64,000 bases of DNA, from the sequence record LR756501.1; one strand, 5' to 3'. Below are positions 7,526-63,841 of the stretch, in pieces (the stretch's first letter is position 1; every line of letters starts with the position of its first letter). Below the pieces are notes generated by a model, which worked only from the letters and a program-made list of their open reading frames with translations, ran no database searches and was not told the origin of the DNA. The translations under genes and the position numbers were made by a program.

Positions 7526-7831
7526 TTAAGGTTTTTCTTTGGTGGCACAAGTAACTCTATACCAGTCACTAACCATGTTAGTTTTAAAACACATAGCCCC
7601 ACCTTTTTCTTCGATTTGTTTAACAACACCCATACTTCTATTTATATCACATTTAGAGTTCTTAAAAAAACTATCACCTACATGTATCGCTTCCTTTGGA
7701 TTTTTCATATATACTGTATCACCTACTTTGAAATCTCCCGTACTTGGTTCAAAATCAGCTTCCTCTGGTGGTAATAAAGCTCCACTTGTGTACCATCTAA
7801 TTGCTTCAAATTCTTTGAATTTAGTCTCCAT
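7526..7831 (-). CDS. Hypothetical protein with IRWYTSGAL motif and SH3-like domain
   Basis: IRWYTSGAL; FKVGDTVYM. Confidence 0.65.
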   Translation of the reverse strand: METKFKEFEAIRWYTSGALLPPEEADFEPSTGDFKVGDTVYMKNPKEAIHVGDSFFKNSKCDINRSMGVVKQIEEKGGAMCFKTNMVSDWYRVTCATKEKP

Positions 7832-9173
7832 CTGTTACTATATTCTTTATATCCTCCACATACTTATAGAGTCTCTTTTGGTAATCCTTTTCTCTATATT
7901 CTTTGTTAGTCATTAAATATACTACGTAACAGAAATATAAAATCTTATCCTTAAATAACTCTTTACCAACTTCTCCACCTACATATCTAAACTCTACGTA
8001 ACCAGGACTATGATCCAATTCAACTAATTTAATACCAAATTCCTTGATATAGAAATCTTTATTAGCTTTAATTAAATAAGGATTTAAGAAGTCTTCAACT
8101 TGTTCGATATTATGAATATCTAATTTTTCTATATTCTGTTTAATATAATCTTTATGTGTGGCTAATCTATCTTTGTGTCTGAAACCAAGGTTCCAAAGTT
8201 TTTCTTTGTTTCTTGTTCTGTAATCTTGTTTGATTTCACCTGTAAGATTTCTTCTTATACCATCAAGTAAACTTTGAGTGAATCTATTATTTGCTCTCCA
8301 CATTATATCACTAAATACAAATGGCGTTCTTTGATCTCTATTCATATCACCCATTAACACCAATCCTTTCAACGGGTTCCATTTGATGTTTTTATCATTA
8401 ACACCAATATTAACGTGTAGAGCAGTTCTTTTCATGTCCATTTTCCAGAAATCTTGTTGATCAAATTCTTCGTAAAAATCATCAAGTTGTTCGAAACAAT
8501 CATTTAAACTCTTAATGTAAGTTTTACTTGAAAATTCAAGAATCCTTTGTTTATCCATATCACCTTCTAATTCGTACTTGAAAGTATCACCGTACTTAGC
8601 GTAGAATTTTGGCATATGTTCTTTGAAATTATCAATGAGATAACCCATGTTCTGTCCAAAAACAAACATAGTTAAATTCTTTAACATTAATGTTGCTATG
8701 TAATCATCTACATCAGTTTCCCAAGCTTTATTAATCTTCCTATCAGTTCTATCCTCGTCGTCTGGATCAACTTTAGATAAAAGAAAATCTATAAAGAAAT
8801 TAACCCAAGTCCAAGTAACATATTGCTGGTGAAGTTTCTGTAAAGCTTTCTTACCCATTTTTGCGGTATCGTTCTCAGCAAACATCTTTTTCTCGTTCTC
8901 TTCTAATCTTTTCTTTGGTAATTTATAACTATCATCAAATCTGTATCCTATCTTACCCCTGGACATATCTAATAATATCTGGTCCTTAACAAAACCAAAC
9001 GCCCTATTTATTTCTTCTTCTGTTTCAAGATAAGGTTCGTCGTCTAGATCGAAGTCAGCAACTAATTCGTACTCAATAGATAAAGTGAAATGATCAGACA
9101 TTGATTGAACAAAGTCTTTATCTTTTCTATTGAATTCGTTTAAGAAATTGGAATAATTGTTAAGTAAGTCCAC
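7821..9173 (-). CDS. Putative amidoligase (COOH-NH2 ligase type 2) with CTS-like N-terminus
   Basis: SIEYEL, LEFSSK, TALHVNIG, VEFRYVGG in the family order; starts MDLLNNYSNFLNE (GTG). Confidence 0.7.
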   Translation of the reverse strand: MDLLNNYSNFLNEFNRKDKDFVQSMSDHFTLSIEYELVADFDLDDEPYLETEEEINRAFGFVKDQILLDMSRGKIGYRFDDSYKLPKKRLEENEKKMFAENDTAKMGKKALQKLHQQYVTWTWVNFFIDFLLSKVDPDDEDRTDRKINKAWETDVDDYIATLMLKNLTMFVFGQNMGYLIDNFKEHMPKFYAKYGDTFKYELEGDMDKQRILEFSSKTYIKSLNDCFEQLDDFYEEFDQQDFWKMDMKRTALHVNIGVNDKNIKWNPLKGLVLMGDMNRDQRTPFVFSDIMWRANNRFTQSLLDGIRRNLTGEIKQDYRTRNKEKLWNLGFRHKDRLATHKDYIKQNIEKLDIHNIEQVEDFLNPYLIKANKDFYIKEFGIKLVELDHSPGYVEFRYVGGEVGKELFKDKILYFCYVVYLMTNKEYREKDYQKRLYKYVEDIKNIVTDGD

Positions 9174-9224
9174 TTTATATAGAAGGGTTTTTCTTCTATA
9201 TATAAAAAAAGAAAATCTAATTTT

Positions 9225-9428
9225 TTAATCAAAGATTCTATAAAGAATTTCGTCTGGTTTCCTGTCTTTACATGTATCGTCTAGGCAGTACAATCCTGAA
9301 CCACCATTATCGTATTCGATATAAACATTATGAATACTAATAACATTTTTTATTTCTCCTGTATCACCACTAGTATCTACTACTCGGGTGCCGATTACGA
9401 TGTCTTCTGGTATAAGTAGTCTTTTCAT
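9225..9428 (-). CDS. Small SH3-like hypothetical protein
   Basis: IVIGTRVVD...GEI; in-operon. Confidence 0.55.
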   Translation of the reverse strand: MKRLLIPEDIVIGTRVVDTSGDTGEIKNVISIHNVYIEYDNGGSGLYCLDDTCKDRKPDEILYRIFD

Positions 9429-9952
9429 AATTTTGCGATTTCTTTTAGGAAAAATTCTTTAATTTTTATTGAATTATCAGTCATTTCTGGGTGTCCTTGA
9501 AAAGCAAGAACAGGTTTAGATTTGTGTCGCATAAAGGTAAGAATATTGTTCTTAACTTCACCAACAAAGTTTTCAGGAATTTTATCAAAATAATACGAGT
9601 GATTATAAAACATATTATAATCACCGTTAACAAAATGAAATCCCTCATTTAATTTCCTGTTGTAATTATTTGGAAACTTATTGTATATTAAAGTTTCGTC
9701 GTAAACAAGACAAAGAATTTGAAGTCCAAGACAGATACCAAGAACTGGTTTGTTAGTAATTTTCAACCATTCTTTTTCTTCTTTTATGTTATCACCTGTA
9801 ATATCAATAGGTCCACCTGAAAGAACAATATAGTCGTATGTCTCACATCTTTCAGCGTTAAAGTTAGCGTAGTTCATCACGTCACAACCTTTAAAAAGTT
9901 GAATGAGTCTACCAATATATTTGGTATTGTGGTTTATAATAAGTCCTGCCAT
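9425..9952 (-). CDS. Class I glutamine amidotransferase
   Basis: VLSGGP, LGICLGLQ nucleophile elbow, QGHPE triad. Confidence 0.9.
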   Translation of the reverse strand: MAGLIINHNTKYIGRLIQLFKGCDVMNYANFNAERCETYDYIVLSGGPIDITGDNIKEEKEWLKITNKPVLGICLGLQILCLVYDETLIYNKFPNNYNRKLNEGFHFVNGDYNMFYNHSYYFDKIPENFVGEVKNNILTFMRHKSKPVLAFQGHPEMTDNSIKIKEFFLKEIAKL

Positions 9953-9955
9953 AGA

Positions 9956-10895: not shown

Positions 10896-11570
10896 TTAAA
10901 CATTTTTTATTAAAATAGTTTTGATAATATCAGACACATCTTCAGCAGCGTCTGCACACTTTTCCAGAGTCTGGAATATATCTTTATTCTTTATAATTTC
11001 AAGGAAATTCTCATCTGCCTTATTCTCAAATAATTGACTCATATAAGCGTAAAATATTCTATCTGCTTCGTTTTCAAGTGAATTGAGATTAATACAGGAT
11101 TGTAAGATTAATTCTTTATTTTTAGCGGCGTCCCTTAAATGGAAAACAGCAAATTCAACCTCTTCAGCCATTTTACCAATAACAGTAACAAAGTTTTTGA
11201 ATTCTTCACTTATTTTCTTTGGTTTTGGTTTGTACCATTGAATACGTTGACTAACAGCGTAGATATAATCAAGTACATCGTCCAAATGTGAAGCTAAAGC
11301 GTGAACGTCTTCCCTATCAAATGGAGTTAAGAACGATACATTAAGTTGTTCATATACCTTATGTGTATAGTTATCAGCCTCACCTTCTAATTCTTTTATT
11401 TTGTTGAATATAGCTTCTCTTTCCAGATCTGTTTTCTGGTAGATTAGGTCGTTCAAAAGTTTCGAAGCGGCTAAAGTACATCTAGCTTGTGATTCGAAAA
11501 GAGGAAAGAAAGATTCGTCTTTAGGTACTAAAAATTTCAATCCGTTGTTTATTTTATCAATTACACTCAT
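10896..11570 (-). CDS. DUF47 / PhoU-like phosphate transport regulator
   Basis: IKELEGEAD, FLTPFDREDVHALASHLDDVLD, LENEAD; adjacent to pit. Confidence 0.9.
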   Translation of the reverse strand: MSVIDKINNGLKFLVPKDESFFPLFESQARCTLAASKLLNDLIYQKTDLEREAIFNKIKELEGEADNYTHKVYEQLNVSFLTPFDREDVHALASHLDDVLDYIYAVSQRIQWYKPKPKKISEEFKNFVTVIGKMAEEVEFAVFHLRDAAKNKELILQSCINLNSLENEADRIFYAYMSQLFENKADENFLEIIKNKDIFQTLEKCADAAEDVSDIIKTILIKNV

Positions 11571-11586
11571 ATATTTTTATTATTTT

Positions 11587-12573
11587 TTATAATATCGCAT
11601 TTAATCCCAAATAGATTAACATTCCTAATATTGCTGATATAGGTATGGTTAAAATCCAAGCCCACATTATCTTTGCGGTAACCGTCCACTTTACAGACTG
11701 TAATCCTTTTCTTAAACCAGCTCCCATTATACCACCAGTAATAGTGTGTGTTGTGCTAACAGGTATTCCTAATTGTGTTGCGCCGAATAGTGCTATAGAA
11801 CCAGCAGTTTCAGCGCACACACCCTCAAATGGTTTAAGTTTAGATATTTTTTGTCCCATTGTTTTAATAATTCTCCAACCACCCATAAGTGTACCCAAGG
11901 CAATTACAGCGTGACAAGATAAAACTATCCACATAGCGATAGGATCTGTTTTAGTAGCGTAACCTGTTACAATAAGCGCAACCCAAATAATACCCATCGA
12001 CTTTTGAGCGTCGTTACCACCGTGTCCAAGACTAAAAGCTGAAGCACTCAATAGTTGTAATCTTCTAAACCATTTATCAGCCTTTGGCGCTGGTACCTTT
12101 TTAAATATATTTAAAACCAATATAGATATTAAATATGATAATATCATACCAACAATAGGTGATATGAATATAAACAGAACTATCTTGGTAATACCACTCA
12201 TAACAAGAGCGCCAAAACCAGCTTTAATCACAGTAGCTCCTATTAATCCGCCAACAAGTGTGTGAGAAGAACTAGACGGTAATCCAAGCCACCAAGTAAT
12301 TAAATTCCAAATAATTGCTGCCCCAAGTGCTGCCGCTATTACCGTAAGATTTATAACATCAGGATTTATAACCCCTTTACCCATTGTGGTCGCCACGTGA
12401 AGGCTAAAAATGAAAACTGCCGCGAAATTAAAGAACGCTGCTAGCATCACTGCTTTGAATGGCGACAACACTTTTGTAGATACTACTGTTGCTATAGAGT
12501 TTGCTGAATCGTGAAAACCGTTGATGAAATCAAAAATCAGAACTAATGTGATAATAATAATTAGAAACGTCAT
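11587..12573 (-). CDS. pit: PiT-family inorganic phosphate transporter
   Basis: NGFHDSANSIAT, GLPSSSSH, HGGNDAQKSMG, GIPVSTTH; many TM segments. Confidence 0.95.
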   Translation of the reverse strand: MTFLIIIITLVLIFDFINGFHDSANSIATVVSTKVLSPFKAVMLAAFFNFAAVFIFSLHVATTMGKGVINPDVINLTVIAAALGAAIIWNLITWWLGLPSSSSHTLVGGLIGATVIKAGFGALVMSGITKIVLFIFISPIVGMILSYLISILVLNIFKKVPAPKADKWFRRLQLLSASAFSLGHGGNDAQKSMGIIWVALIVTGYATKTDPIAMWIVLSCHAVIALGTLMGGWRIIKTMGQKISKLKPFEGVCAETAGSIALFGATQLGIPVSTTHTITGGIMGAGLRKGLQSVKWTVTAKIMWAWILTIPISAILGMLIYLGLNAIL

Positions 12574-22359: not shown

Positions 22360-23553
22360 ATGGGTTCTACAAAATACTTATATCAATTTATACCAGATAA
22401 GTTTGAATATCTCACTAAAACCAAAATTATTGAATACAAAGAAGTTAATCTCAAAACAGCTTACCTTATTAATATTATACACGAACTCATTCTTAAATTT
22501 TATTTCTCCAATAGAAACTACATAGATTTGGAACCAAATGAAGATATAAAATTCAACCTTTGGAGTTCCATCTTACGTAAGAAATACGGAATGCATTATA
22601 ATAAATACATGGAATATCTTACGGATATTGGTTTTATATCTATGACTTCTGATTATTACGTTGGTAAGAAAGCCAAAACATACAAGATAAATCCATTTGA
22701 AATAAATACTATAAAGAAAGTAAAGACAAATGATGCTATTCTAGCCAAGAAAAGCACTAAAGAATATTTGATGCAATCTATTACAAGTTACTGTAATAGT
22801 CCGATAAATCCAAAAATAAGAAAGAAACTCGTTGACGACCTTTATCATGTTCAAATAGATTACGAAAAATCCATCAGCCTACTTAATGATTTGAAGAAGA
22901 ACGGTAAAATAGAAATTAATAAGTTTTACAAGAACCTTCATAGTGTTGAAAGTATTAAATCTAATAATCTATTTTTTAAATTTGATGAGTACGGCAGATT
23001 TCACACAAACTTCACAATTCTTAAAAGAGAAATAAGACAGAATTTCTTAAAGATAGATAACGAAGAAATTGTAGAAATTGATATTGGTAATTCACAACCA
23101 TTATTCTTAGCTCTTCTCTTACAAGAAGAAATGGAACCAAACGACCCAGAGATTAACAATTATATTTGGTTAGCCAGACAAGGATTATTCTACGAACATA
23201 TAATAAATAATTTCACTAATTTATCCAGAAGCGACGTTAAATTATTGACTTATAAAGTGTTATTTGGACATAACGGTATAAACTCAACAGAAAATAAAAT
23301 ATTCCAAAGTCTATTTCCAAAAATATATGATTATATAATTGAGTACAAGAAAGTTAACGATAACTATAAATCAATGGCTCATATCCTTCAAAGGATGGAG
23401 AGTGATTTTATATTTGGTAAAGTGATAACAGAGATATATGAAAAGATACCAGGCATAAGGTTATTCACTGTACACGATTCTATTTTATTTCCAATAAAAT
23501 ACGAGAAGCAAGTAAGAGAAATATTTGAAAGAAATAAGAAGGAATTATTTTAA
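22360..23553 (+). CDS. Family-A polymerase-like palm protein lacking an exonuclease domain
   Basis: VEIDIGNSQP (A), RSDVKLLTYKVLFG (B), TVHDS (C). Confidence 0.6.
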   Translation: MGSTKYLYQFIPDKFEYLTKTKIIEYKEVNLKTAYLINIIHELILKFYFSNRNYIDLEPNEDIKFNLWSSILRKKYGMHYNKYMEYLTDIGFISMTSDYYVGKKAKTYKINPFEINTIKKVKTNDAILAKKSTKEYLMQSITSYCNSPINPKIRKKLVDDLYHVQIDYEKSISLLNDLKKNGKIEINKFYKNLHSVESIKSNNLFFKFDEYGRFHTNFTILKREIRQNFLKIDNEEIVEIDIGNSQPLFLALLLQEEMEPNDPEINNYIWLARQGLFYEHIINNFTNLSRSDVKLLTYKVLFGHNGINSTENKIFQSLFPKIYDYIIEYKKVNDNYKSMAHILQRMESDFIFGKVITEIYEKIPGIRLFTVHDSILFPIKYEKQVREIFERNKKELF

Positions 23554-24194
23554 TCGTTGTCCCATTCTTCTTCACCGTATGGATCGAATGGATTTATTCC
23601 ACCAACTAATTTTACTTGTTTTTTATGGTCTATATAGAAAGATTTACCATCTTCTGTATAAATTTTTAACAGGTCTCCTTGATGAATAGCATCTAGTGAA
23701 ATTGTAATTTTTACGGGAACACATTTGGCTATTTTTTTAATATTTGGATTGGAAGCATTAAAACCCGATAAAGCATCAGCATTTTTACTCCCAGTGAAAA
23801 TAATTTCTTTTCCGAAATATTTTTCAAATTCTTTCATAAAAGTATCTATGAAAAAGAATTTACCTGTTGGTGATATATCAAAATATACACTTCGTCTTCT
23901 ATCACTAGATCTGACTAAATAAGGTGTGCAATATTGGCTTTCACTAGCTCTGTGATATATTACGTCTTCAACATTCATTATAGCGTTATGAGAAGTACTC
24001 ATATTACATTTAAAAGTTTCTGATAGAAAATTATTTGTATGAAAGGACACAATTCTACCAACAAGATGTTCTCTAAATATTTCAGCCATTTTCTCACCAG
24101 CTTCCATATCAATTCTTCTAATATCATCAGAGAAACTAATGACCTTATCAGTTTTCATAGCCTCATTTAAAAAATTATCGAATTTAGTTCTCAT
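23550..24194 (-). CDS. Putative internal head protein, CTS-like start plus DPYGEEEW tail
   Basis: MRTKFDNFLNEA ... FDPYGEEEWDND. Confidence 0.7.
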   Translation of the reverse strand: MRTKFDNFLNEAMKTDKVISFSDDIRRIDMEAGEKMAEIFREHLVGRIVSFHTNNFLSETFKCNMSTSHNAIMNVEDVIYHRASESQYCTPYLVRSSDRRRSVYFDISPTGKFFFIDTFMKEFEKYFGKEIIFTGSKNADALSGFNASNPNIKKIAKCVPVKITISLDAIHQGDLLKIYTEDGKSFYIDHKKQVKLVGGINPFDPYGEEEWDND

Positions 24195-24243: not shown

Positions 24244-25338
24244 ATGATTAAAGACTATTTAAAGTTCAACGAATCCACAAAACCTATATGGTATTACGAT
24301 AGAATAATCGCTCACGGGAGTCTTAGATTCTGGGGTGATGACGGTCAATATAACGTAGACATAGAAGGTCAAACTGGTAGAGTTGCTACTATTAAAGGCG
24401 GTGGATATAAGATGGTTGGAGTAGTTTTTGATAATTATTTTTTTAATCAACTCACAGATTTAGATAAGATTTTAAAATTCAAAAGAGGATTGTGGGTTGG
24501 TATGGATCAACTTGAAAAGGTTGTAGTCGAAAAACCAAAAATCGAAAGAAGACCGCTATCCTTCTCTGATAAAGCTAAAAAAGTTTTTGAACATTGTGAG
24601 TATATTGAACCACCATTGTTCTTAGATGTAGATTATATAGATGTTACTGAGAAAAATGATACTATATCATATATAACAAGAGATAGATTGGAAAGACTGG
24701 GTTACGATGACGATCAATGGGATAACAAATTAAGACAAGAGATGAAGGTTGGTAAGTTAATTATGATGATAACACCAAATACAAATCAAGTTAGCTTAGA
24801 GAAGAAAATAAGTTTGTTTAAATCAGCTCATAACGCTATCGTTACCAACAAATCAACTTTTAAAATAGTAAAAGGAGATGAAATAGGTAAATGGTACAAC
24901 GAAGACTCTTATCAAGAAGGAACAGGACAATTAAATAAATCTTGTATGAGAGATAAAATGGACAGACTATCAGTTTATTATACTAATCCAGATAAAATAA
25001 ACATGTTAATATTATTAAATGAAGACGATAAACTTGTTGGTAGAGCTCTTGTTTGGAAAGTAGATGAGCCCGAAGGTGTTACATATATGGACAGAATATA
25101 TACTGTATATTCAGAAGACGTGCATAGGTTCGAAGACTACGCCAGACAACACGGTTGGAAATATTTTGAGATGTATAGATATACGACAATGAAAGTGTAT
25201 TTTGATTACGATTTAGGCAATGAAGAGGAGAATCCATATATGGACACATTTACGAATTATTACGCTGATATTCGATGTTTAACAAATAAATATCTTGAAG
25301 GTCATCGCGATGATTTAATTGATTTCACTTACGTATAA
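24244..25338 (+). CDS. SCM-GRALVW-MDRIY family paralog 1, CTS-like start
   Basis: MIKDYLKFNES; KSCMR, GRALVWK, YMDRIY, NPYMDTF. Confidence 0.75.
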   Translation: MIKDYLKFNESTKPIWYYDRIIAHGSLRFWGDDGQYNVDIEGQTGRVATIKGGGYKMVGVVFDNYFFNQLTDLDKILKFKRGLWVGMDQLEKVVVEKPKIERRPLSFSDKAKKVFEHCEYIEPPLFLDVDYIDVTEKNDTISYITRDRLERLGYDDDQWDNKLRQEMKVGKLIMMITPNTNQVSLEKKISLFKSAHNAIVTNKSTFKIVKGDEIGKWYNEDSYQEGTGQLNKSCMRDKMDRLSVYYTNPDKINMLILLNEDDKLVGRALVWKVDEPEGVTYMDRIYTVYSEDVHRFEDYARQHGWKYFEMYRYTTMKVYFDYDLGNEEENPYMDTFTNYYADIRCLTNKYLEGHRDDLIDFTYV

Positions 25339-25362: not shown

Positions 25363-26781
25363 ATGGAAAATATGTTAAAATATCAAGAATTTATAAATGA
25401 GGCCAAGATAGACTCTACTTACGCTGATAACGAGAATAAACATAAATTATTATTTTCTGAAACTATAAGTAAAGATTTTTACGAAAGAAGAAATGAGTTC
25501 CCTTTGTTTTATCAATTCTATTTAGATTCTGACGTATTTTACGGTCTTAGATTTATTACTGATAACGAAGATATAGAAAGGATAATAGATAATTACGAAG
25601 ATATTAGATTCACTCTACTTTTATCCAGATCATATAGGGACACAGATGACGAACTTCCAGGTGATCATAAACATTTGTTAACATTTGAAGGCGGTAGATT
25701 TAACCTTTCACAAATTATAGAAAATAAAGAAAATTATTATTTTTATAGAATAGTTGAAGGACCTAGAAATAATAATATTCCAAACTGGGACGAAGCCGTT
25801 GATTTTGAACAGATCAATGAGAAAAGATGGATATTTGTTATAAGGAAAGAATCAACTTGTTCGTTAGTTAAGACAGAATCAAGAGAAAGTAGTGGGACTT
25901 GGGCCGAAAGACATTTATCTAAATTATATGGTTGGAAAGAAGATCCTAAAAAGATAAAATTAAATTTCACATATAATGGTGCAGCCATTACAAGAGCTAA
26001 TGGTTTGATTAATACAGTTTTCCACTCTACTGACGCTGATATATTTGAAATAGAAGATAATCCTGAGACATGTTTCAAGTATGATTTAGTTATGCCAGAT
26101 GGTAAAAAGATAGAAGTAAAGAAATATACAATTAAAGAAATCTGGAAAAATAACGCACCTGTTCCTATTTTACTTGCTCAACAAATCAGAATGTCCACAA
26201 GAGAAACACTCATTAAGATTGTGAAAATGTATAGGGATTTATTTGATGAAGGAACACCAGAATACGAAAATGCTGACGTTTTAGTTGAAATGCAACCAAG
26301 AGAACTACAAGATTATTTTGATATAAGAAAACAACCAGATGGAAGGTTGGATCCAATATGTACAAGAATAAAAGCATATTACAATTCAAGGATAAGAAGA
26401 TTGGTGGAGAAATTTAACGCGATGAACCAAAATTTATGGATGCAAGGTATATACGGTATTTATTTTTGCGGTGAAGATAGACACACAAGAAAAAAAGATT
26501 TCCTCATTAAAGTTGGAGAGAACGGAATTAGAAATTTCAATTATTTTTGGAGAGAATCTAATAGTTGGTTGGGATTCAATGAATTGAAATTATTTATGAC
26601 TGTAAAAGGCGAAGCTTGGGAATATATACTATCTGAGTGGGACACTTTTGTTAAGACTTTCCAAGTAGAAAACCACGACGAATATCTTGCTGATATTGAA
26701 AACGGTGAAATTGATATCGATGATAAAACTTATAAATATAACGATATGGATCACTACTGGGTAGAAGAACCAAAAGAATAA
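25363..26781 (+). CDS. CTS-bearing protein with possible PD-(D/E)xK nuclease core
   Basis: MLKYQEFINEA; GTWAERH...KYDL...IEVKK. Confidence 0.5.
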   Translation: MENMLKYQEFINEAKIDSTYADNENKHKLLFSETISKDFYERRNEFPLFYQFYLDSDVFYGLRFITDNEDIERIIDNYEDIRFTLLLSRSYRDTDDELPGDHKHLLTFEGGRFNLSQIIENKENYYFYRIVEGPRNNNIPNWDEAVDFEQINEKRWIFVIRKESTCSLVKTESRESSGTWAERHLSKLYGWKEDPKKIKLNFTYNGAAITRANGLINTVFHSTDADIFEIEDNPETCFKYDLVMPDGKKIEVKKYTIKEIWKNNAPVPILLAQQIRMSTRETLIKIVKMYRDLFDEGTPEYENADVLVEMQPRELQDYFDIRKQPDGRLDPICTRIKAYYNSRIRRLVEKFNAMNQNLWMQGIYGIYFCGEDRHTRKKDFLIKVGENGIRNFNYFWRESNSWLGFNELKLFMTVKGEAWEYILSEWDTFVKTFQVENHDEYLADIENGEIDIDDKTYKYNDMDHYWVEEPKE

Positions 26782-30146: not shown

Positions 30147-31025
30147 TTATTCCCAAACATATAACCCATTTCCCCAATTTCTGGAATTCAATCCGCATTT
30201 TCTACAAATCCAACCCCCACCGTGTTCCCTTTCAACTTTTGATTTTTTATTACATTTTGGACAAGTATATATCTGAGTATCATCGTTATAAAAATCACTT
30301 AGAGATAAATTACCGGCATCTAAAGGATTATTATAGTCTTCCAAAGGTCCATCAAAACCAAACACTTCATCATCCGTATCATCAAATTCTTCACCGAACG
30401 AACAAACATGTTTATCACCTAAAATTCTCCCAATAAATCTATTTTGACCGTATCTATTATTATTGGCACGCCATTCGGCTAACAACTCTTCACCTCTTGC
30501 TCTTTGTTGATGATATAGTTCCATTTCTCTATCCCATCTTCCAGGATTCCTGAATCCATCTGGTTGTTTATTATCATCCCAAATCTCTTCGCCATAGGGA
30601 TCTAATTCTCCCCTTGGATCACCAACTGGATATTTAGTATTTTCATCAACCTCCCATAATTCTTCACCGTAAGGATCTAAATACGGATCAAATATTTGTT
30701 TAATAGAGGACATTACTTCCACTTTATCGTTAAATGAAATAGCAGTAAAATTTTGATCTTGTGGGTTCTTTGTAGAAAACAATTTAAAATAATCTCTATT
30801 TGGCCAAACAACTACCCTCATTGGTACGATGCTAGTATTCTTAACTCTTCCTCTAAAATCCTTTTGTACTATATTTAATCTTCTGCCTAATAACATTTTT
30901 TTAAATTGTGGTATCGCTCTCTTTCTATCGTTGGCACATTGTAATAATACGTCATTGAAAGAAAAAACGTCCCCAACTTTAACTGTAACAGCTTCATTTA
31001 TATATGTAGAAAAATTAGTTATCAT
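30147..31025 (-). CDS. CTS protein with two internal DPYGEExW motifs and C-terminal Zn ribbon
   Basis: MITNFSTYINEA; DPYGEELW, DPYGEEIW; CPKC..CRKC. Confidence 0.75.
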   Translation of the reverse strand: MITNFSTYINEAVTVKVGDVFSFNDVLLQCANDRKRAIPQFKKMLLGRRLNIVQKDFRGRVKNTSIVPMRVVVWPNRDYFKLFSTKNPQDQNFTAISFNDKVEVMSSIKQIFDPYLDPYGEELWEVDENTKYPVGDPRGELDPYGEEIWDDNKQPDGFRNPGRWDREMELYHQQRARGEELLAEWRANNNRYGQNRFIGRILGDKHVCSFGEEFDDTDDEVFGFDGPLEDYNNPLDAGNLSLSDFYNDDTQIYTCPKCNKKSKVEREHGGGWICRKCGLNSRNWGNGLYVWE

Positions 31026-32006: not shown

Positions 32007-32324
32007 TTATTCATCTTCCCATTTTTCTTCGCCATATGGGTCTAGGTCTCTTCTAGGGTTTCCACCTATGTCTTCAAACGCCGATCTAAGATCATTTAAA
32101 AGAGTGAATAAAGCATTTGAAAAATCATCAATAGTAACATCTTTCATTATTGTTTTACTATCATATTTAGTGAGTTCTTTTTTAGTCTCATTCCTTACTG
32201 ATTTTAAAATATTGATTATATCAGATTTAGAAATCCAAATATCACCTTCCATTTCTTTAAAATCACAGGATCTTAAACCTTTATCTCTATTCCAAGTAGA
32301 TTCGTTAAATCTTTTAATTCTCAT
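32007..32324 (-). CDS. Small CTS-like protein with DPYGEEKW tail
   Basis: MRIKRFNES ... LDPYGEEKWEDE. Confidence 0.7.
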   Translation of the reverse strand: MRIKRFNESTWNRDKGLRSCDFKEMEGDIWISKSDIINILKSVRNETKKELTKYDSKTIMKDVTIDDFSNALFTLLNDLRSAFEDIGGNPRRDLDPYGEEKWEDE

Positions 32325-33903: not shown

Positions 33904-33925
33904 AAATTTATTTCCTTCCTTAACG

Positions 33926-35210: not shown

Positions 35211-35933
35211 TTAATTTTCCCAGTTCTCTTCTCCGTAAGGGTCTAGGGTCTTTAATCTCATATCCATTATCTTAATAGGTTGTGTATGAACTAATAATTG
35301 TGAAGTTTTATCGTCACATTCTACTATAATAAAATCTTGTGTTGTTCCATTATGTACACCAATCCTAACAACATGTTTTGTGTATTTTATTTGATCTCCA
35401 CCTTTTATCGGTTTACCTTGATAAGTAAGGAGTTGATCAATAAAATGTTCTTCAAAGAAATCTAAAAATTTACCAACGTCGAATAGCTTTGCTTTCCCCT
35501 CGTCCTGCCAAGAATATTTTACTTTTCTTTCTTTATCTTCAAATATAACTGGGTAATAATCACCCTTATTATTACCAAGTATTACATCGTTTACTTCCAA
35601 TATCTTCTGTCTTCCATTTTCATCCATTACACCAATTATCTTACCATTTATGGATTTTTTCAATTCTTCCACCATTATTTCAGCAGAATCTTTCTTAGCT
35701 TTTTCAACTGCAACTTTCTTTTCTTTTTCTAGTTCACTCATTTTTTTCTTGAGTTCAGCAAGATTCTTATCTATATCTCTGGTGTTCTTATTAGTGGTAT
35801 CGTTCAAAACATTATGAAATTCATTATAGAATGACTTAGTATCATATATTTTCTTAACACCAGGAGGATCAGGCTTTATCATATCTTCATTTAAGACTTC
35901 AAGATTTAAATATGAATTATATTTCTTTAACAT
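35211..35933 (-). CDS. CTS protein with DPYGEENW tail
   Basis: MLKKYNSYLNLEVLNE ... LDPYGEENWEN. Confidence 0.75.
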   Translation of the reverse strand: MLKKYNSYLNLEVLNEDMIKPDPPGVKKIYDTKSFYNEFHNVLNDTTNKNTRDIDKNLAELKKKMSELEKEKKVAVEKAKKDSAEIMVEELKKSINGKIIGVMDENGRQKILEVNDVILGNNKGDYYPVIFEDKERKVKYSWQDEGKAKLFDVGKFLDFFEEHFIDQLLTYQGKPIKGGDQIKYTKHVVRIGVHNGTTQDFIIVECDDKTSQLLVHTQPIKIMDMRLKTLDPYGEENWEN

Positions 35934-37111: not shown

Positions 37112-37450
37112 TTATTGTTCTTCAAATTCTCCATCCCCCACTGGTTCTGGTCCTAAAACAGAACTATCCCACTCTTCCTCACCACTAATGGCTCTAGTAG
37201 CGTTAAATTGTAAAAGAGCGTTAGCAGCGTTATTGTGAAATTTACTGATATTAATCTCTTCTCCAACTACGTTAACATTATATTTAACTTTTACATGACC
37301 AGAAATTTTTTCTATTGTGATAAGAACGTCACATTTACGTGCTATATCATACAATAAGGCTTTAACTTTTGGAATAATAGCCCAACCTAAAGATATTTCA
37401 AAACTATTGTGATGAAGTTCTTCGTTGATAAATTCAATATATTTTTTCAT
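37112..37450 (-). CDS. Small CTS protein
   Basis: MKKYIEFINEE; degenerate GEEEW near C-terminus. Confidence 0.7.
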   Translation of the reverse strand: MKKYIEFINEELHHNSFEISLGWAIIPKVKALLYDIARKCDVLITIEKISGHVKVKYNVNVVGEEINISKFHNNAANALLQFNATRAISGEEEWDSSVLGPEPVGDGEFEEQ

Positions 37451-40067: not shown

Positions 40068-40263
40068 ATTAAAATATAAAATTACTTATAGATGTCCTAC
40101 TCCTCATACACCTGAGGCTGATAGTGAAGAAATTTTCATTGATGCTTATAACGATAAAAGAGCAGTAGATAAATTTTATTCAATGTTCAAAGGTAGAACA
40201 TTTGTATTTGAAAAAGTAGAAGAAGTAATAGAAGAAAAAACATATAAAGTAGATGCCAAATAA
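40057..40263 (+). CDS. Hypothetical protein
   Basis: In-operon ORF. Confidence 0.6.
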   Translation: MINKLKYKITYRCPTPHTPEADSEEIFIDAYNDKRAVDKFYSMFKGRTFVFEKVEEVIEEKTYKVDAK

Positions 40264-42196: not shown

Positions 42197-42394
42197 ATGG
42201 AAAATGTTATAAAATTTAGCGATTTTAACGAGGGAGTAGATTATCATACCGAAACCAAAGAAGAAAGACACGTTAAATCTAAAGAATGGTTTATCAAAAA
42301 AATATCCGCTATGGGTGGAGAAGATAAAGATAAATTATCCAAAATGGGATTAGAAGAACTCGGTAGATTATACGCTAAGAAGAAAAAGAAATAA
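42197..42394 (+). CDS. Small CTS-like protein
   Basis: MENVIKFSDFNEG. Confidence 0.65.
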   Translation: MENVIKFSDFNEGVDYHTETKEERHVKSKEWFIKKISAMGGEDKDKLSKMGLEELGRLYAKKKKK

Positions 42395-42396: not shown

Positions 42397-42984
42397 ATGG
42401 ACAGACTTTCTACACTATTAGAAAAATCTAACGCTGATGTTCCTATAAAATTATTGAACTATCCAGACGTTCGCCAATCTACTAAAGATAGATGTGGTAT
42501 AGACGCCGTTCAAACTGTTCTTCAATATTACGGTGAAGATTATAGAGAAGATGAACTCCTTAGTAGTCTCAGAAATAAAAACACTTACCTATCAGATAAT
42601 ATGGAAAGTGCTAGAGTTAATAACGTAGTAAATCTTTTCAAAGAAAAAGAATATAAAATTGATTTCAAACAAATGAATATCAACGATATAATAGGTTATT
42701 TAAATAGAGATATTCCTGTTATTTTATTGATACAGGCTTGGGGCGATGTGGATGATTACGAAGAAGAATGGAAGAGTGGACATTACGTAGTGGCTGTTGG
42801 ATATACGAAGAATAAAATATTATTTGAAGATCCAGCCACTTTTCAAATGACTTATTTACCTTTTGATGAATTGATGGTAAGGTGGCACGACGAAGATGAA
42901 GAAAGAAGATATATTAATTTTGGGATGGCTATATATGGTAAACAACCGAAGTTTGATAAAAATAAATGGTTAAAAATTGGTTAA
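42397..42984 (+). CDS. C39-like cysteine peptidase
   Basis: RQSTKDRCG, SGHYVVAVGY, FEDP. Confidence 0.85.
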   Translation: MDRLSTLLEKSNADVPIKLLNYPDVRQSTKDRCGIDAVQTVLQYYGEDYREDELLSSLRNKNTYLSDNMESARVNNVVNLFKEKEYKIDFKQMNINDIIGYLNRDIPVILLIQAWGDVDDYEEEWKSGHYVVAVGYTKNKILFEDPATFQMTYLPFDELMVRWHDEDEERRYINFGMAIYGKQPKFDKNKWLKIG

Positions 42985-43522
42985 GAATTATTCAACATAT
43001 ATAAATGAAGCAAAAGGTGATCAACTTTTCAAACAGGGTGACGTCGCTTATTTTAATGGTGATGATTGGTCATCGAATATAGGACCATGCGAAATTCTTG
43101 TGGCTGGATTTAATACTAAAAAAAAGATGTGGGAATATAGAATTAAAAGGGGGATTAATACTTTTTGGACAGAAGAGGCACACATAAAACATTTGGAAAA
43201 AGAAGATCCAGTTAAAACAAAGGCCGCTGTGAGATGGTATAAAAGTGGTAAACTTAGTGTACCAGTTCCATCAGAAGATGTGCCTGAATATAGTGATTTT
43301 ATAACTAACGATAAATTTAGACAATTTTTATTAGATAACGGAGCTTACACAAAATATATTAATAATGTGAAACAACTTTGTGGTAGATTACCTAATTTTA
43401 TAGAAAAATTTAGTCAAAATGATCAAAGAGAACTTATAAATCACGCTTTTACTTGGGACAGGACACCTGAAGATCAAAACTACTGGAGTGACTTAAATCA
43501 AAAATGGAAAGAAATATACTAA
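42977..43522 (+). CDS. CTS protein with SH3-like domain and VRWYKSGKL motif
   Basis: MVKNYSTYINEA; FKQGDVAY. Confidence 0.75.
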   Translation: MVKNYSTYINEAKGDQLFKQGDVAYFNGDDWSSNIGPCEILVAGFNTKKKMWEYRIKRGINTFWTEEAHIKHLEKEDPVKTKAAVRWYKSGKLSVPVPSEDVPEYSDFITNDKFRQFLLDNGAYTKYINNVKQLCGRLPNFIEKFSQNDQRELINHAFTWDRTPEDQNYWSDLNQKWKEIY

Positions 43523-46698: not shown

Positions 46699-47040
46699 TT
46701 AATTTAAACTCTTTCTATATCTTTTTTCTTGATTCATTATACCAACATTCACTAAATCAACTAGTTCCTCTCCCCTTTTCTTTTTATCTTTAATTTCTTC
46801 TTTATATTCGTCTGGTTCTAGTCTATCTTTAACAAGGGTCATGTATTCGAAATCAGATATTTTACTTATATCGTTAGTATGGCAAAACTTACAGTTAGTG
46901 GCTTCATCATTGAATGTTTTAAACAAAGCATTACACTTATTACATTTGTAATAGGCTGTAAGATCTTCCTTTGAAGTAACTAGTGGAGCTGCTCCAATTT
47001 GCTCGGCTTCGAATGTTTTAAAGTCCATTAAATTTCTCAT
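46699..47040 (-). CDS. Zn-ribbon protein with CTS-like start
   Basis: MRNLMDFKTFEAE; CNKC..CKFC. Confidence 0.65.
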   Translation of the reverse strand: MRNLMDFKTFEAEQIGAAPLVTSKEDLTAYYKCNKCNALFKTFNDEATNCKFCHTNDISKISDFEYMTLVKDRLEPDEYKEEIKDKKKRGEELVDLVNVGIMNQEKRYRKSLN

Positions 47041-47702: not shown

Positions 47703-48240
47703 TTCTTTGCCTTTCTATATATTCAATTATTTGTACTATTGATAATGGTTCGTAACCAACGTTGTCTACTCCAACATCAATAACACCAGGAGCGTGAACG
47801 TATTCACCATGATGTTCGTAAATTCCGTGAACGTGTCCGTGAAGACAGATTATATCAGAACCTTTTGATGGGTAGTGTGGATAATGACTCATAGAAAAAT
47901 TGTAAGTCTTACCGTTGTGAACGTAAGACATTTCGTGTGAGTAATCCCACCATTGAATTAATCCAGAGTTTTTGTAGTTGTTAAGCATGTATGTTCTATC
48001 ATGATTACCTTTAATCATGTATTTAATACCGTTTAGTTTACATAAAAGATTCCTAGCGAATCTCTTAGACATAGTAAGACTAAAATCACCAAGATAGTAA
48101 ACCTCGTCTTCGGGTTTAATAACTTTGTTCCAGGATTCTGTCATGTGTTTGTTCATAGAATGAACATCACCAAATTGTCTGTTGCAGAATTCAATAATAT
48201 TGCGATGTCCAAAATGGGCATCTGATGTAACGTAAATCAT
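47695..48240 (-). CDS. Calcineurin-like metallophosphoesterase
   Basis: SDAHFGH, GDF, GNHD, HGHVH, DVGVD. Confidence 0.92.
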   Translation of the reverse strand: MIYVTSDAHFGHRNIIEFCNRQFGDVHSMNKHMTESWNKVIKPEDEVYYLGDFSLTMSKRFARNLLCKLNGIKYMIKGNHDRTYMLNNYKNSGLIQWWDYSHEMSYVHNGKTYNFSMSHYPHYPSKGSDIICLHGHVHGIYEHHGEYVHAPGVIDVGVDNVGYEPLSIVQIIEYIERQRNG

Positions 48241-48305: not shown

Positions 48306-48626
48306 ATGGCACACGTTAAAAGATTTAAAGAAGTAAACGAAAATTTTTATTTTAGTGACTGGGTTGATATGGATCTATTACAATCAGTTATAGACCACAT
48401 GAAACCTAATAAAGAATTATCTGGTGACGAATTCAAACAATCCCTTAGAGGATTTAATAACGAATACGAAGTTACCGTACAGAAAAGATTACCAGCAACA
48501 TTTGGTAAACAAGTGGCTGTTTGGATAGATCTATATCTAGTTCAAGATGTTATAGATAGAATGAATCCAGTTTTATGTAAACAATCAGATGAATATAAAG
48601 CAGAATTAAAAAACTTCTTAAAATAA
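48306..48626 (+). CDS. CTS-like small protein with internal repeat
   Basis: MAHVKRFKEVNE; WVDMDLLQSVIDHM / WIDLYLVQDVIDRM. Confidence 0.65.
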   Translation: MAHVKRFKEVNENFYFSDWVDMDLLQSVIDHMKPNKELSGDEFKQSLRGFNNEYEVTVQKRLPATFGKQVAVWIDLYLVQDVIDRMNPVLCKQSDEYKAELKNFLK

Positions 48627-49040
48627 ATGCACGTTAAAAGATTTAAAGAAATATTTGAAGCTGTGGCTGTACATAAAAGTGTGAAGCCCGAAAAACTTCC
48701 TCATTGTGCCGAGATGGAAGCCAAGGGATATAGAATCGCGTCAATAGGCGACGATAAATACGCTTTTCACAAGAATTACGAAGCAGATGATGATATTTAT
48801 TGGTTAGGTAAAAATACACCCGATTACCAGTACGGTAATACTTATATTGCCACACCAGATATTGTTGCTGATAAGAAACACAACCCTTTTTATTCGATTT
48901 TCTGTAAATGTGATCCAGGTCCAACAGATGAGCAGAAGAAGATCATAGCAGAAAGAGAAAAAGAGAATAAGAAAAGGTACGAGTTAATTCAGAAACAGAT
49001 TAGAGGTGAAGCCGAAAAGAAAAAGAAGAAAAATAAATAA
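48627..49040 (+). CDS. CTS-like small protein
   Basis: MHVKRFKEIFEA. Confidence 0.65.
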   Translation: MHVKRFKEIFEAVAVHKSVKPEKLPHCAEMEAKGYRIASIGDDKYAFHKNYEADDDIYWLGKNTPDYQYGNTYIATPDIVADKKHNPFYSIFCKCDPGPTDEQKKIIAEREKENKKRYELIQKQIRGEAEKKKKKNK

Positions 49041-61937: not shown

Positions 61938-62273
61938 ATGTTATATAATGATTTTTATCAAGATCCACAAGACCCAAATACTAATTTACGTCCGTCAATG
62001 AGCGAATATAATTGGAATAAATGGCAACCAGTAATCGATTTTATTGGAATTACAGACACAGAAAAAAGAAACTGGTTGACTCAATATTTACAAAATTTAG
62101 AGGATAACGGTAATACAATTGATATACCAAAGAAATCAGCTTCGGACGCTAAACTAGATATTTTAGAAAGTGTTATCAGAATTTCAAATACCTCTAAAGT
62201 TAAAAACACTAATATAGAATTTAGTAACGATGATAACCTAGAGACAAGCAAAATCACAATTACAATAGAATGA
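61938..62273 (+). CDS. Protein with gp23 N-terminal-like segment
   Basis: NKWQPVIDFIGITDTEKRNWLTQYLQN. Confidence 0.5.
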   Translation: MLYNDFYQDPQDPNTNLRPSMSEYNWNKWQPVIDFIGITDTEKRNWLTQYLQNLEDNGNTIDIPKKSASDAKLDILESVIRISNTSKVKNTNIEFSNDDNLETSKITITIE

Positions 62274-62839
62274 CGGAAGTAACTGAAAATAGGGCTTATG
62301 TGAGAATAGATGCTGAAAAAGCTTTATCTAAGTGGGAGCCTATTATAAATGCTTTAAATGTATCTGATCCCGATATAAAAAGGATCATGGCAGATTACGC
62401 TGAGCACGACGGTACTATTGAAATTGGAGATAGAACTTTAGAACAAAAGCTTTATAGTTTATTACCAGTTTCTTTAAAGGTATTATCACAGTTAAATTTA
62501 AAGAATAAGAAAGTTGTTTTAGTGGACTCTACATATTGGATGAATAAAAATAGAACTGATTTAATAGATAAGATGTTAGATGAAGTAGATCCAATGAATG
62601 AACACAAGAAACAAATTAAAATAAATATTGATAGTGATCTATTGGTCACAATAGGAACTGAAAAGACTATAGATCATTGTGAATCAGCGTTAATGAATCA
62701 ATTAATCGTTATGATAAATAAAGAATTAGAAAATGGCACTACATTATATTTAACAAAAATGATTAGTTCTATCGATATTGAGCCAAATAGTTTTGGACCT
62801 AATAAAATGGTAATGACTTCTTATTATAACGTAGAATAA
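62270..62839 (+). CDS. Protein with gp23 N-terminal-like segment
   Basis: SKWEPIINALNVSD..KRIMADYAEH..LLPVSLKV. Confidence 0.5.
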   Translation: MTEVTENRAYVRIDAEKALSKWEPIINALNVSDPDIKRIMADYAEHDGTIEIGDRTLEQKLYSLLPVSLKVLSQLNLKNKKVVLVDSTYWMNKNRTDLIDKMLDEVDPMNEHKKQIKINIDSDLLVTIGTEKTIDHCESALMNQLIVMINKELENGTTLYLTKMISSIDIEPNSFGPNKMVMTSYYNVE

Positions 62840-62853
62840 AATAATTACATAAA

Positions 62854-63111
62854 ATGACAAGAGAAGAATCAATTGAAAGAGCAAACGCAACTATTAGGGG
62901 ACTAAGAAACGCCGCAGACGATATAGAACATTTCATGAAATTTTTAATAGATTTTGATGACGACATGGAAGGTCTAGGACCTTTAGATAATATTGGTGGC
63001 GACGAAAATTGTCAGGCGATTGGAATAGCATGCGAAGAAAATTCTAAAGTATTAAATATATTGTTTTATAGAAAATACGATCTATATACAAAGACAATGT
63101 TAAAAAAATAA
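62854..63111 (+). CDS. Hypothetical protein
   Basis: In-operon ORF. Confidence 0.6.
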   Translation: MTREESIERANATIRGLRNAADDIEHFMKFLIDFDDDMEGLGPLDNIGGDENCQAIGIACEENSKVLNILFYRKYDLYTKTMLKK

Positions 63112-63121
63112 TTGAAGTGAT

Positions 63122-63841
63122 ATGATCTATAGTTTTCCGAAATATTTACAACATATAAAAGAAGGTCTTATCAAAACTTATGATATAGATTTTGTTTTAG
63201 ATAAAAGTATTAGGGAGTTAGATGTTTTAAATGTTAAATATAAAATTGAAAAAAAAGTAAATAATACAATAAAACTAACAATTTACAATTTTAATAAAGT
63301 TTATATTAAACATTTATTTGGATTATTAAATAAAAATTTCACTAATTTGTTTGGTTGGTTTCCAACTTATATGTATATTACCAATTTATCCGGTATGAGC
63401 AATGCTATGAATTATGATGAAAATTATTTAAAAACAACATATGAATATCTAGATGAAGTATCTATTATATATGAATCTAAATTTGATATAGAGACAGAAA
63501 TACCGAATAAGTTATACCATATTTCTATTCAAGAATACATGAATAAAATATTATCTATTGGATTGGTACCAAAAACTAAAAATAAGAAATCTTCACACGG
63601 AGAAAGAATCTATGTTTGTAAAAGCGTCGAAGATTGTTTGTTTCTGGTCGAAAAAATGAAATTTTATTTCTTTAGTAAAGATAAAATAAATACAAATTGG
63701 ATAATTTATGAAATTGTTACAAAAGATTTGAATTTATTATTATATAATGATCCTAATTTTATAAATAAGGGTTATTATTTATTAGGAAATGTGCCTCCGG
63801 TGAATATAAAGGTAGTGTTAAAAGAAAAAAATAACCAATAA
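63122..63841 (+). CDS. CTS-like protein with possible ADP-ribosyltransferase/KptA-fold C-terminal domain
   Basis: PKYLQHIKEG; KLYHIS..KILSIGLVPK..ERIYVC. Confidence 0.5.
   Translation: MIYSFPKYLQHIKEGLIKTYDIDFVLDKSIRELDVLNVKYKIEKKVNNTIKLTIYNFNKVYIKHLFGLLNKNFTNLFGWFPTYMYITNLSGMSNAMNYDENYLKTTYEYLDEVSIIYESKFDIETEIPNKLYHISIQEYMNKILSIGLVPKTKNKKSSHGERIYVCKSVEDCLFLVEKMKFYFFSKDKINTNWIIYEIVTKDLNLLLYNDPNFINKGYYLLGNVPPVNIKVVLKEKNNQ

Follow-up and report, generated by a model that had tools for sequence, protein, structure and literature searches.

An expanded family of proposed T4-like capsid-targeting leaders in a 735-kb uncultured phage

In a 735-kb uncultured phage, about 60–90 mostly unrelated proteins begin with a short peptide that closely matches the phage T4 signal for loading proteins into the capsid, which points to an unusually large packaged cargo, inferred here from sequence alone and in the absence of virion data. 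The analysis started from a 64,000-nt stretch of DNA (the window), which is 100% identical to record LR756501.1 (735,411 bp) and in which about 20 proteins carry such a start. A first-pass annotation had listed about 20 window proteins with a T4 capsid-targeting-like N-terminus, most of them at 23.5–49 kb, and had inferred a packaged and injected cargo that includes enzymes. The observation was confirmed and proved larger than first described: all ten N-termini named there were found at the genes to which they had been assigned. Eleven window proteins carry a firm leader, M-x(2-5)-[YF]-x-x-[FY]-[ILV]-N-E, and score above 12 bits with a leader HMM, and about 10 more carry shortened or gapped forms, for example MIKDYLKFNE, MIKKFKTYNE, MENVIKFSDFNE and MKDYWSYIKE. 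The looser classes are themselves enriched at N-termini, with 9 observed against 0.7 expected for [FY]xx[FY]NE and 24 against 3.8 for [FY]xx[FY]E[small or acidic]. The window features are collected in Table 1.

Table 1. Leader-bearing genes and the assembly gap in the window (positions are those of the window; scores from the leader matrix and the leader HMM).
Position	Strand	Feature	N-terminal start	Observations
7821..9173	-	450-aa protein	MDLLNNYSNFLNE (GTG start), coded at 9135-9173	Matrix 19.7; HMM 12.0 bits; no Pfam match; paralog at record 380531-381388
23550..24194	-	214-aa protein	MRTKFDNFLNE followed by A, coded at 24162-24194	Matrix 26.0, highest in the genome; no Pfam match
24244..25338	+	364-aa member of family A	shortened, MIKDYLKFNE followed by S, coded at 24244-24273	Loose variant lacking the I/L/V position; variant class enriched at N-termini; family A homology
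25363..26781	+	472-aa ORF, likely start at 25372	MLKYQEFINE followed by A	Matrix 23.2; HMM 19.7 bits
27902..28291	-	129-aa ORF, likely start at 28267	MIKTSYKDFVNE followed by Q	Matrix 20.4; HMM 16.7 bits
28284..29456	-	390-aa member of family A, contains the N gap	MIKYDEFLVLNE followed by A (two-residue insertion), coded at 29421-29456	HMM 13.8 bits
28536..28556		Assembly gap of 21 N, at codons 301-307 of gene 28284-29456		Same frame is the only open one on both sides; paralog spacing matches
30147..31025	-	292-aa protein with a C-terminal zinc ribbon	MITNFSTYINE followed by A	Matrix 23.0; weak zinc-ribbon Pfam hits at residues 249-279
32007..32324	-	105-aa protein, uncertain member	weak, MRIKRFNE followed by S	Identified by eye only; HMM 2.9 bits
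34069..35193	-	374-aa member of family A	MISYNNFINE followed by A, coded at 35164-35193	Matrix 24.8; about 30 metagenomic homologs keep the leader
35211..35933	-	240-aa protein	extended, MLKKYNSYLNLEVLNE followed by D	Matrix 17.6; HMM 15.4 bits
36029..37099	-	356-aa member of family A	degenerate, MMLSYKLFEE followed by S	Loose variant; paralog of 28284-29456
37112..37450	-	112-aa protein	MKKYIEFINE followed by E	Matrix 23.4; HMM 20.7 bits
41435..42187	+	ORF with likely start at 41471	MKDYWSYIKE followed by E	HMM 6.9 bits; K at the position before E
42197..42394	+	65-aa protein	shortened, MENVIKFSDFNE followed by G	HMM 5.2 bits; belongs to the N-terminally enriched [FY]xx[FY]NE class
42977..43522	+	181-aa protein (TTG start)	MVKNYSTYINE followed by A	Matrix 24.3; HMM 20.6 bits
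43523..44593	+	356-aa protein	MIKKYNTYINE followed by G	Matrix 23.3; HMM 19.9 bits
44547..45893	+	ORF with likely start at 44586	shortened, MIKKFKTYNE followed by D	HMM 5.3 bits; ATG at 44586 overlaps the end of the preceding gene by 8 nt
46699..47040	-	113-aa protein, uncertain member	loose, MRNLMDFKTFEAE	Identified by eye only; no HMM support
48306..49040	+	Two tandem small genes (48306-48626 and 48627-49040), uncertain members	loose, MAHVKRFKEVNE and MHVKRFKEIFE	HMM 3.2 and 1.8 bits
63122..63841	+	239-aa protein, uncertain member	loose, MIYSFPKYLQHIKE followed by G	HMM 5.7 bits; uncertain member

A genome-wide motif count, which had been proposed beforehand as a check, was performed on the rebuilt 735-kb genome. 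The strict motif occurred 35 times within the first 30 residues and 4 times in about 200,000 internal residues. Shuffling of the first 20 residues gave 0.07 matrix hits against 48 observed, and the HMM gave 93 N-termini above 6 bits against 8.2 expected from internal windows; chance is therefore excluded. In most cases the core starts 3–7 residues after the initiator Met. Of the 61 matrix hits in the genome, 10 lie in the window. Ordinary enzymes of the window (RtcB, thymidylate synthase, glycosyltransferase, metallophosphatase) lack the leader. The assembly gap lies 300 codons downstream of the leader of its gene; only the frame that continues across the 21 N is open on the far side, and two in-genome paralogs align collinearly across the gap with equal spacing (12 against 12 and 15 against 15 residues), so that the gene reads as continuous and in frame and the gap does not touch the finding.

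A nucleotide-level or translation-start effect of an AT-rich genome, such as an unstructured 5' coding region or a hidden DNA or RNA signal, was considered because all motif residues use AT-rich codons (F, Y, I, N, K, E) and upstream regions are also AT-rich. This is very unlikely given the composition-preserving shuffles; in addition, synonymous codons and third-position identity match genome usage, so selection acts on the peptide, and the variable positions differ freely. N-terminal hits above a matrix score of 12 numbered 55 in this phage, 26 in the 642-kb sister phage LR756502, 1 in Tenacibaculum phage PTm1, which has a similar GC content (0.297) and a T4-like head, and 3 in T4.

When the mature parts of 54 leader proteins were compared by BLAST, 42 unrelated groups were obtained, and distinct Pfam domains were found behind the leader elsewhere in the genome, namely a SAM methyltransferase, a PPK2 kinase and a pol-beta nucleotidyltransferase. 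It is thus hardly likely that the shared N-terminus is merely inherited by gene duplication within a few paralog families without a common function, although one family (family A) has about 16 paralogs, several with leaders, and other small families exist. The leader is retained while the rest of the protein diverges to 30–40% identity; about 30 closer homologs of family A keep it, whereas the distant homologs P0040, P0041 and P0044 lack it. Most homologs in the sister phage keep a leader-like start, including PPK2 and the methyltransferase. In the structure model of the family A protein at 34069-35193, residues 1–14 are below pLDDT 50 and the fold starts near residue 21, which places the leader outside the predicted fold. 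Within the window no leader protein has a confident enzyme domain: a Pfam search of 20 window leader proteins gave nothing significant, and the one folded family, family A, which has no Pfam match, gave only a marginal GNAT-like match of its C-terminal domain (Foldseek best E 2.6e-3; VIA-align Z 8.5 over 89 residues, rmsd 2.5, within the range that the program calls common).

The interpretation in the first-pass annotation was partly supported. Its premise on T4 holds, as ipII and ipIII begin MKTYQEFIAE, a peptide described as the capsid targeting sequence (CTS) removed by gp21 (PMC9026906, PMC5694885), and a large capsid-targeted set is the best reading; its statement that the cargo includes enzymes is not supported inside the window. 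The resemblance to T4 is more than visual. A matrix trained only on this phage ranked ipIII and ipII second and third of all six-frame positions of T4, each 3 residues after the Met. The four conserved leader positions equal T4 CTS residues 4 and 7 (Y4 and F7, targeting) and 8 and 10 (I8 and E10, processing), as mapped by suppressor analysis (PMC9026906). Y or F was present at both aromatic positions in all 35 seed leaders, and I, L or V plus an invariant E were followed by A, G or S in 21 of 35, a preference shared with T4 gp21 cleavage sites. The same matrix also hit gp61.1 and an ORF at 114.2 kb in T4, neither of which is known to be a virion protein, so the motif alone does not prove packaging.

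The genome encodes a T4-type head module at record 71969-78166, with a portal (Portal_T4, E 1e-69), a gp21-like head maturation protease (phrog_207, E 5e-27) and a gp23-like capsid protein (E 2e-25). The protease is an 807-aa protein at record 73913-76336. BLASTP to T4 gp21 gave E 4e-7 with 26% identity over 149 aa, and GEFDHP aligned with GELNHP and VSSRAAG with VSSRGLG; both motifs (GE-x-x-HP and VSSR), which contain the presumed catalytic His and Ser, are invariant in 27 homologs. The Pfam Peptidase_S77 score is just under the cut-off of 27 bits (22.9–24.7 bits; 22.9–24.1 bits for PF03420 with the 807-aa protein), while many close homologs carry a precomputed PF03420 hit. The protease is fused to 12 repeats at exact 14-residue spacing with the core Y-S-E-Y-I-A-E. 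The repeats are conserved in all 7 inspected relatives, from contigs of 235–737 kb, and the region is predicted, at low confidence, as one long helix. The sister phage LR756502 has the same repeats, PTm1 has no repeat match, and one relative with repeats (L034, a 566-kb contig) showed no leader in the 22 kb sampled.

The reading considered best, and held with moderate confidence, is that the leaders are T4-type capsid-targeting propeptides, expanded to roughly 60–90 proteins, or 6–9% of the ORFs, of a Mahaphage-type phage. In this view the 10–13-residue peptide would form a short amphipathic helix presenting the two aromatic residues, which would dock the protein onto the scaffolding core during prohead assembly; the gp21-like protease would then cut after the invariant Glu of [ILV]-x-E, usually before Ala, Gly or Ser, and free the mature protein inside the head. 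The core itself would be the C-terminal extension of the protease, whose repeats, each carrying the same Y-x-x-Y-[IL]-A-E element, are read as regularly spaced cleavage sites and may also be the docking partners that the leaders imitate. The motif, its N-terminal specificity, its spread over unrelated proteins, its match to the T4 signal and the T4-type head genes were shown by the analysis, whereas binding, cleavage, packaging, injection and the catalytic role of the protease motifs are inferred. Several points speak against this reading. No proteomic data were found for this phage, and there is no virion proteome, N-terminal mapping or expression data for it or any close relative; 60–90 different cargo species exceeds anything documented; some cargo are metabolic enzymes (PPK2, a DeoC-type aldolase) with no obvious role in a capsid; leader proteins are not basic, unlike the T4 internal proteins (median pI 5.9 against 6.0 for other proteins); and the residue before Glu is Asn or Lys in the leaders but Ala in the repeats. 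The T4 matrix hits not known to be virion proteins, the Peptidase_S77 score just under the cut-off and the lack of a leader in the 22 kb sampled of L034 also speak against it.

The nature and number of the cargo and the T4 matrix hits not known to be packaged would also fit a docking helix or address tag for another destination or partner, such as a shared chaperone, an assembly factory or another intracellular compartment, resembling the T4 signal only through convergence on an amphipathic helix. This is considered unlikely, because the match to T4 covers exactly the residues mapped for targeting and for processing, including the Glu, because the same element is repeated 12 times in the protease-scaffold protein of the head operon, and because of the residues favoured after Glu. 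A substrate tag for the prohead protease without stable packaging, for instance for timed activation or removal of proteins late in infection, is somewhat less likely still. The [ILV]-x-E element fits the protease specificity of T4, and the N-terminus of the protease itself has conserved LIVE-9 and INE-20 sites; however, the two aromatic positions, which in T4 serve targeting rather than cleavage, are as conserved as the cleavage residues, and, as established for T4, gp21-type proteases act inside proheads.

A further reading, not excluded but tentative and rather unlikely, is that in the largest known phages the cargo leader is a single copy of the scaffold's own repeat unit. About 90 proteins, or 9% of the coding capacity, would then join the prohead core by co-assembling with a 12-unit Y-x-E-Y-I-A-E helical array fused to the protease and would all be released by the same cut after Glu, and the virion would deliver a large, fast-evolving enzyme kit, including a polyphosphate kinase, a methyltransferase and a nucleotidyltransferase, into the host together with the DNA.

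A capsid-targeting function would give a purely sequence-based way to list the packaged, and probably injected, proteins of uncultivated huge phages, whose virions nobody has analysed, and would suggest that a sizeable part of their extra coding capacity serves as pre-made cargo rather than as genes expressed after entry. It offers a concrete model for how a scaffold recruits cargo, namely leader mimicry of a scaffold repeat, a question still open even for T4, and it supplies dozens of natural variants of a targeting peptide that is already used in T4 to package foreign proteins.

Among the closest known systems is the T4 CTS of internal proteins IPII and IPIII, with the related propeptides of IPI, Alt and gp24. 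Shared with it are a 10–13-residue N-terminal peptide directly after the Met, the pattern Y-x-x-F-I-x-E, its presence on unrelated mature proteins, the co-occurrence with a gp20/gp21/gp23-type head module, and a cargo set that turns over quickly between related phages (only 17 of 61 have a homolog in the sister phage). The present system differs in having roughly 60–90 carriers instead of a handful, Asn or Lys rather than Ala before the Glu, a cargo that is not basic and includes PPK2, a methyltransferase and a nucleotidyltransferase, and a scaffold-like partner with 12 tandem copies of the same element, which the matrix did not find in the T4 head genes; the T4-type function is here inferred. 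The propeptides of head and ejection proteins in the giant phages phiKZ, 201phi2-1 and SPN3US (proteases gp175 and gp245) likewise occur with a large capsid with many internal proteins and a diverged gp21-type protease that cuts after Glu (here the packaging and the cleavage are inferred), and a second diverged protease paralog, as reported for SPN3US (PMC5694885), is present here at record 11314-11850. Those propeptides are mostly longer than 100 residues and no shared short N-terminal consensus is described for them in PMC5694885, while the leader here is short, T4-like and highly stereotyped. Like the T4 prohead core proteins gp22, gp67 and gp68, a scaffold cut into short peptides by gp21, the predicted helical repeat region, with a Glu-ending site every 14 residues, is encoded between the portal and capsid genes and would be cut into small peptides that can leave the head; here, however, the scaffold-like region is fused to the protease in one protein and is a regular tandem array that resembles the cargo leader. 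In encapsulins a short terminal peptide on unrelated enzymes directs them into an HK97-fold shell, as is proposed here for the leaders, but those peptides are usually C-terminal, bind the shell directly and are not removed, and there is no sequence similarity.

The window was 100% identical to LR756501.1 (and LR756503.1), an unannotated 735,411-bp 'uncultured phage' record, window position 1 corresponding to record position 503,061. The record may correspond to the 735-kb genome that Al-Shayeb et al. 2020 called the largest phage genome at that time and placed in the 'Mahaphage' clade with predicted Bacteroidetes hosts (PMC7162821), although the accession itself is not named in that text. For genome-wide analysis, the record on both sides of the window was joined with the window, and the assembly gap was kept as 21 N. 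The gap lies 300 codons downstream of the start of its gene; the upstream part is exactly 300 codons, and beyond the gap only the frame that continues across 21 N is open, for 83 codons. Two in-genome paralogs (window 36029-37099 and 34069-35193) aligned on both sides with the same spacing. The gene is therefore continuous and the gap is irrelevant to the leader.

All N-termini listed in the first-pass annotation were found, so its observation held, and its count of about 20 leader proteins in the window is fair, with half of them firm: 11 window genes scored above 12 bits with a leader HMM and about 10 more had shortened or gapped versions. The consensus from 35 strict matches was M-[IV]-K-[KN]-[YF]-x-x-[FY]-[ILV]-N-E-[AGS]. 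Genome-wide, the strict motif occurred 35 times in the first 30 residues and 4 times in about 200,000 internal residues. A position matrix, with its threshold set to allow 5 internal hits, found 54 N-termini; after shuffling of residues 2-20, 0.07 matrix hits were expected against 48 observed, and above a matrix score of 4 there were 86 observed against 8.3 expected. An HMM allowing indels gave 93 N-termini above 6 bits against 8.2 expected and 134 above 4 bits against 22.7 expected. Looser regular-expression classes were each 6 to 20 times over-represented at N-termini. ORFs came from a simple greedy caller, so that counts depend on start-codon choice; on this basis about 60 proteins are firm carriers and up to about 90-110 are plausible, out of 1017 ORFs. 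The window holds 10 of the 61 firm ones, and this is a genome-wide property with a local cluster.

Pure paralogy was considered as the source of the shared N-terminus, but after removal of the leader the 54 proteins fell into 42 BLAST-unrelated groups. One large family does exist, here called family A, with about 16 members and the invariant motifs GEDIRYWY, SCM, DRIY and PYMDT. About 30 metagenomic homologs of its window member 34069-35193, at 35-97% identity, keep the leader, and three distant homologs with different N-termini lack it. A nucleotide-level effect was likewise considered; synonymous codons at the conserved positions followed genome-wide usage, and third-position identity was 0.58, inside the 0.41-0.70 range expected per residue from codon usage. 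Selection is therefore on the peptide. The word TTTATATATA(G) was found within 100 nt upstream of 21 of 61 leader genes against 69 of 880 other genes (p = 2e-8), a fourfold enrichment at leader genes; it precedes 89 genes and most often lies within ~30 nt of the start codon. It also precedes the portal operon and the giant tail-fibre genes, which suggested a late promoter, but it precedes topoisomerase II genes as well, so that it cannot be called late-specific and remains promoter-like only.

For comparison with T4, whose ipII and ipIII start MKTYQEFIAE, every position of all six frames of T4 was scored with the matrix trained only on this phage. The four best hits, in order gp61.1 (MKTFKEFIKE), ipIII, ipII and an ORF at 114.2 kb (MLLEFKQFLYE), all lay 3-4 residues after a Met. 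The first and the fourth have CTS-like N-termini that score as high as ipII and ipIII, although neither is known as a head protein. According to the review of Black's work (PMC9026906), the first 10 residues of IPIII suffice for encapsidation, residues 4 and 7 matter for targeting and residues 8 and 10 matter for processing; these are exactly the four conserved leader positions here (aromatic, aromatic, I/L/V and E).

The head operon of the record encodes three genes in T4 order: a Portal_T4 protein (E 1e-69), an 807-aa protein whose first ~230 residues match head maturation proteases (phrog_207, E 5e-27), and a Gp23-family capsid protein (E 2e-25). The Pfam Peptidase_S77 score of the 807-aa protein was 22.9 bits, just under the cut-off. 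Its protease domain aligned with T4 gp21 at 26% identity over 149 residues (E 4e-7), with the GE-x-x-HP and VSSR motifs in register, whereas sequence searches of the PDB gave no match for the protease domain. Residues ~318-480 of the same protein are 12 tandem 14-residue repeats with consensus I-x-Y-S-E-Y-[IL]-A-E-N-L-D-K-N, three of which were among the ten best internal matrix matches in the whole proteome, despite having Ala where the leaders have Asn. The protein has more than 5000 metagenomic homologs, including contigs of 566-737 kb, in which the architecture is conserved; all seven that were inspected keep 10-13 repeats at exact 14-residue spacing. The AlphaFold model is of low confidence (mean pLDDT 56) but gives a protease domain, a long helix spanning 208-482, a disordered acidic/Gln-rich linker, and a small beta domain and a helical C-terminal domain. 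The N-terminus has nearly invariant LIVE-9 and INE-20 sites, which parallels the LIE-9 site noted for T4 gp21 (PMC9026906). No [ILV]-x-E-[AGS] sites were found in the N-termini of the capsid protein and the portal. A second, short (178-aa) gp21-like protease paralog lies far from the head operon (phrog_207, E 3e-19) and recalls the diverged protease paralog reported for SPN3US. In addition, several small proteins share a segment (K-W-x-P-[IV]-I...) with residues 26-125 of the gp23-like capsid protein; for window 62270-62839 this is 42% identity over 48 aa (E 3e-8, pairwise), and it may be a second, capsid-propeptide-like way of entering the prohead.

Coordinates of the features described in the window, in the record and in T4
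Feature	Sequence	Position	Strand	Remarks
Assembly gap	window	28536-28556		21 N
Family A gene containing the gap	window	28284-29456	-
Other family A window genes	window	24244-25338; 34069-35193; 36029-37099
Family A, record loci (and others)	record	61904-66169; 434121-440763
RtcB RNA ligase; thymidylate synthase; glycosyltransferase (weak match); metallophosphatase	window	32398-33936; 40253-41338; 37550-38752; 47695-48240	-; +; +; -	E 3e-54 (RtcB); E 1e-86 (thymidylate synthase)
Small proteins sharing a segment with the gp23-like protein	window	61938-62273; 62270-62839	+; +
Further such proteins	record	276342-276932; 730457-730711
Head operon	record	71969-78166		portal, 807-aa protein, capsid protein
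Protease fused to 12 repeats	record	73913-76336 (L002:23913-26336 in the retrieved piece L002 of the record)	+	807 aa
Second gp21-like protease paralog	record piece L001	11314-11850	-	178 aa
Methyltransferase	record	137588-138229		213 aa; leader score 25.9; domain at residues 41-151
PPK2	record	152222-153436		domain at residues 166-390
Nucleotidyltransferase	record	457823-459457		weak pol-beta match
Radical SAM protein	record	698220-699260		only a degenerate leader
Genes preceded by the promoter-like word (examples)	record	71969 (portal); 61904; 391944-422930
gp61.1	T4, AF158101.6	18966-19130	-
ORF at 114.2 kb	T4, AF158101.6	about 114210-114440	+

The presumed cargo was then examined. Pfam found nothing significant in 20 window leader proteins. 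A batch scan of 60 carriers genome-wide found one each of PPK2 (E 1e-76), a SAM methyltransferase (6e-19), a DeoC-type aldolase (1.5e-17), DUF7919 and a radical SAM protein, plus a weak pol-beta nucleotidyltransferase; those that could be placed are tabulated. The family A model (mean pLDDT 87.6) has a disordered leader, with residues 1-14 below pLDDT 50, followed by a predicted SH3/CAP-Gly-like barrel at residues 23-96 and a C-terminal domain with a marginal GNAT-like match (Z 8.5). Foldseek against the PDB gave no match below E 0.001 for family A, PDB sequence searches gave none, and all nearest structural clusters are viral proteins of unknown function. The four ordinary enzymes interspersed among the leader genes of the window have no leader, and ARAGORN found no tRNA gene in the window. 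[quoted passage not shown]

Relatives were compared by N-terminal hits above matrix score 12, which numbered 55 in this phage (735 kb), 26 in LR756502.1 (642 kb), 1 in the cultured Tenacibaculum phage PTm1 (T4-like head, GC 0.297) and 3 in T4. LR756502.1 has 53% protease identity and 10 repeats, and PTm1 showed no repeat match by pattern. A 709-kb contig with the repeat protease had 3 leaders in the 22 kb sampled, and a 566-kb contig had none in 22 kb. Only 17 of the 61 firm carriers have a homolog (E below 1e-8) in the 642-kb sister phage LR756502.1, and most of those homologs again start with a leader-like peptide, including PPK2 (MINNFIKFINEE) and the methyltransferase (MIIKRYNEFVFEN). The presumed cargo set therefore turns over quickly, as described for the T4 internal-protein loci (PMC9026906), while the tag is retained.

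The best-supported reading is a T4-type capsid-targeting and processing propeptide, expanded by more than an order of magnitude, whose partner would be a scaffold-like repeat array that carries the same element. The motif, its position and its distribution were established from sequence, whereas all functional statements are computational, and which step does what, from targeting to processing, is inferred from T4. That the leader docks onto the repeats is a hypothesis of this work; complex prediction of protease-scaffold residues 1-490 with the first 32 residues of the window protein 34069-35193 gave no verdict (score 0.00) and counts neither for nor against binding. A tag for another destination or partner and a protease tag without packaging were considered as rival readings. 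The interpretation in the first-pass annotation, an unusually large packaged and injected cargo that includes enzymes, is thus only partly supported: enzymes with leaders were found genome-wide but Pfam gave none among the 20 window proteins, and packaging and injection are inferred.

Literature searches on the capsid targeting sequence returned no paper about metagenomic huge phages, and the paper of Al-Shayeb et al. mentions no protease (PMC7162821). The kind of signal is known from T4; what differs from T4 in the present phage is the scale, the presumed enzyme cargo and the tandem-repeat, scaffold-like region fused to the protease.
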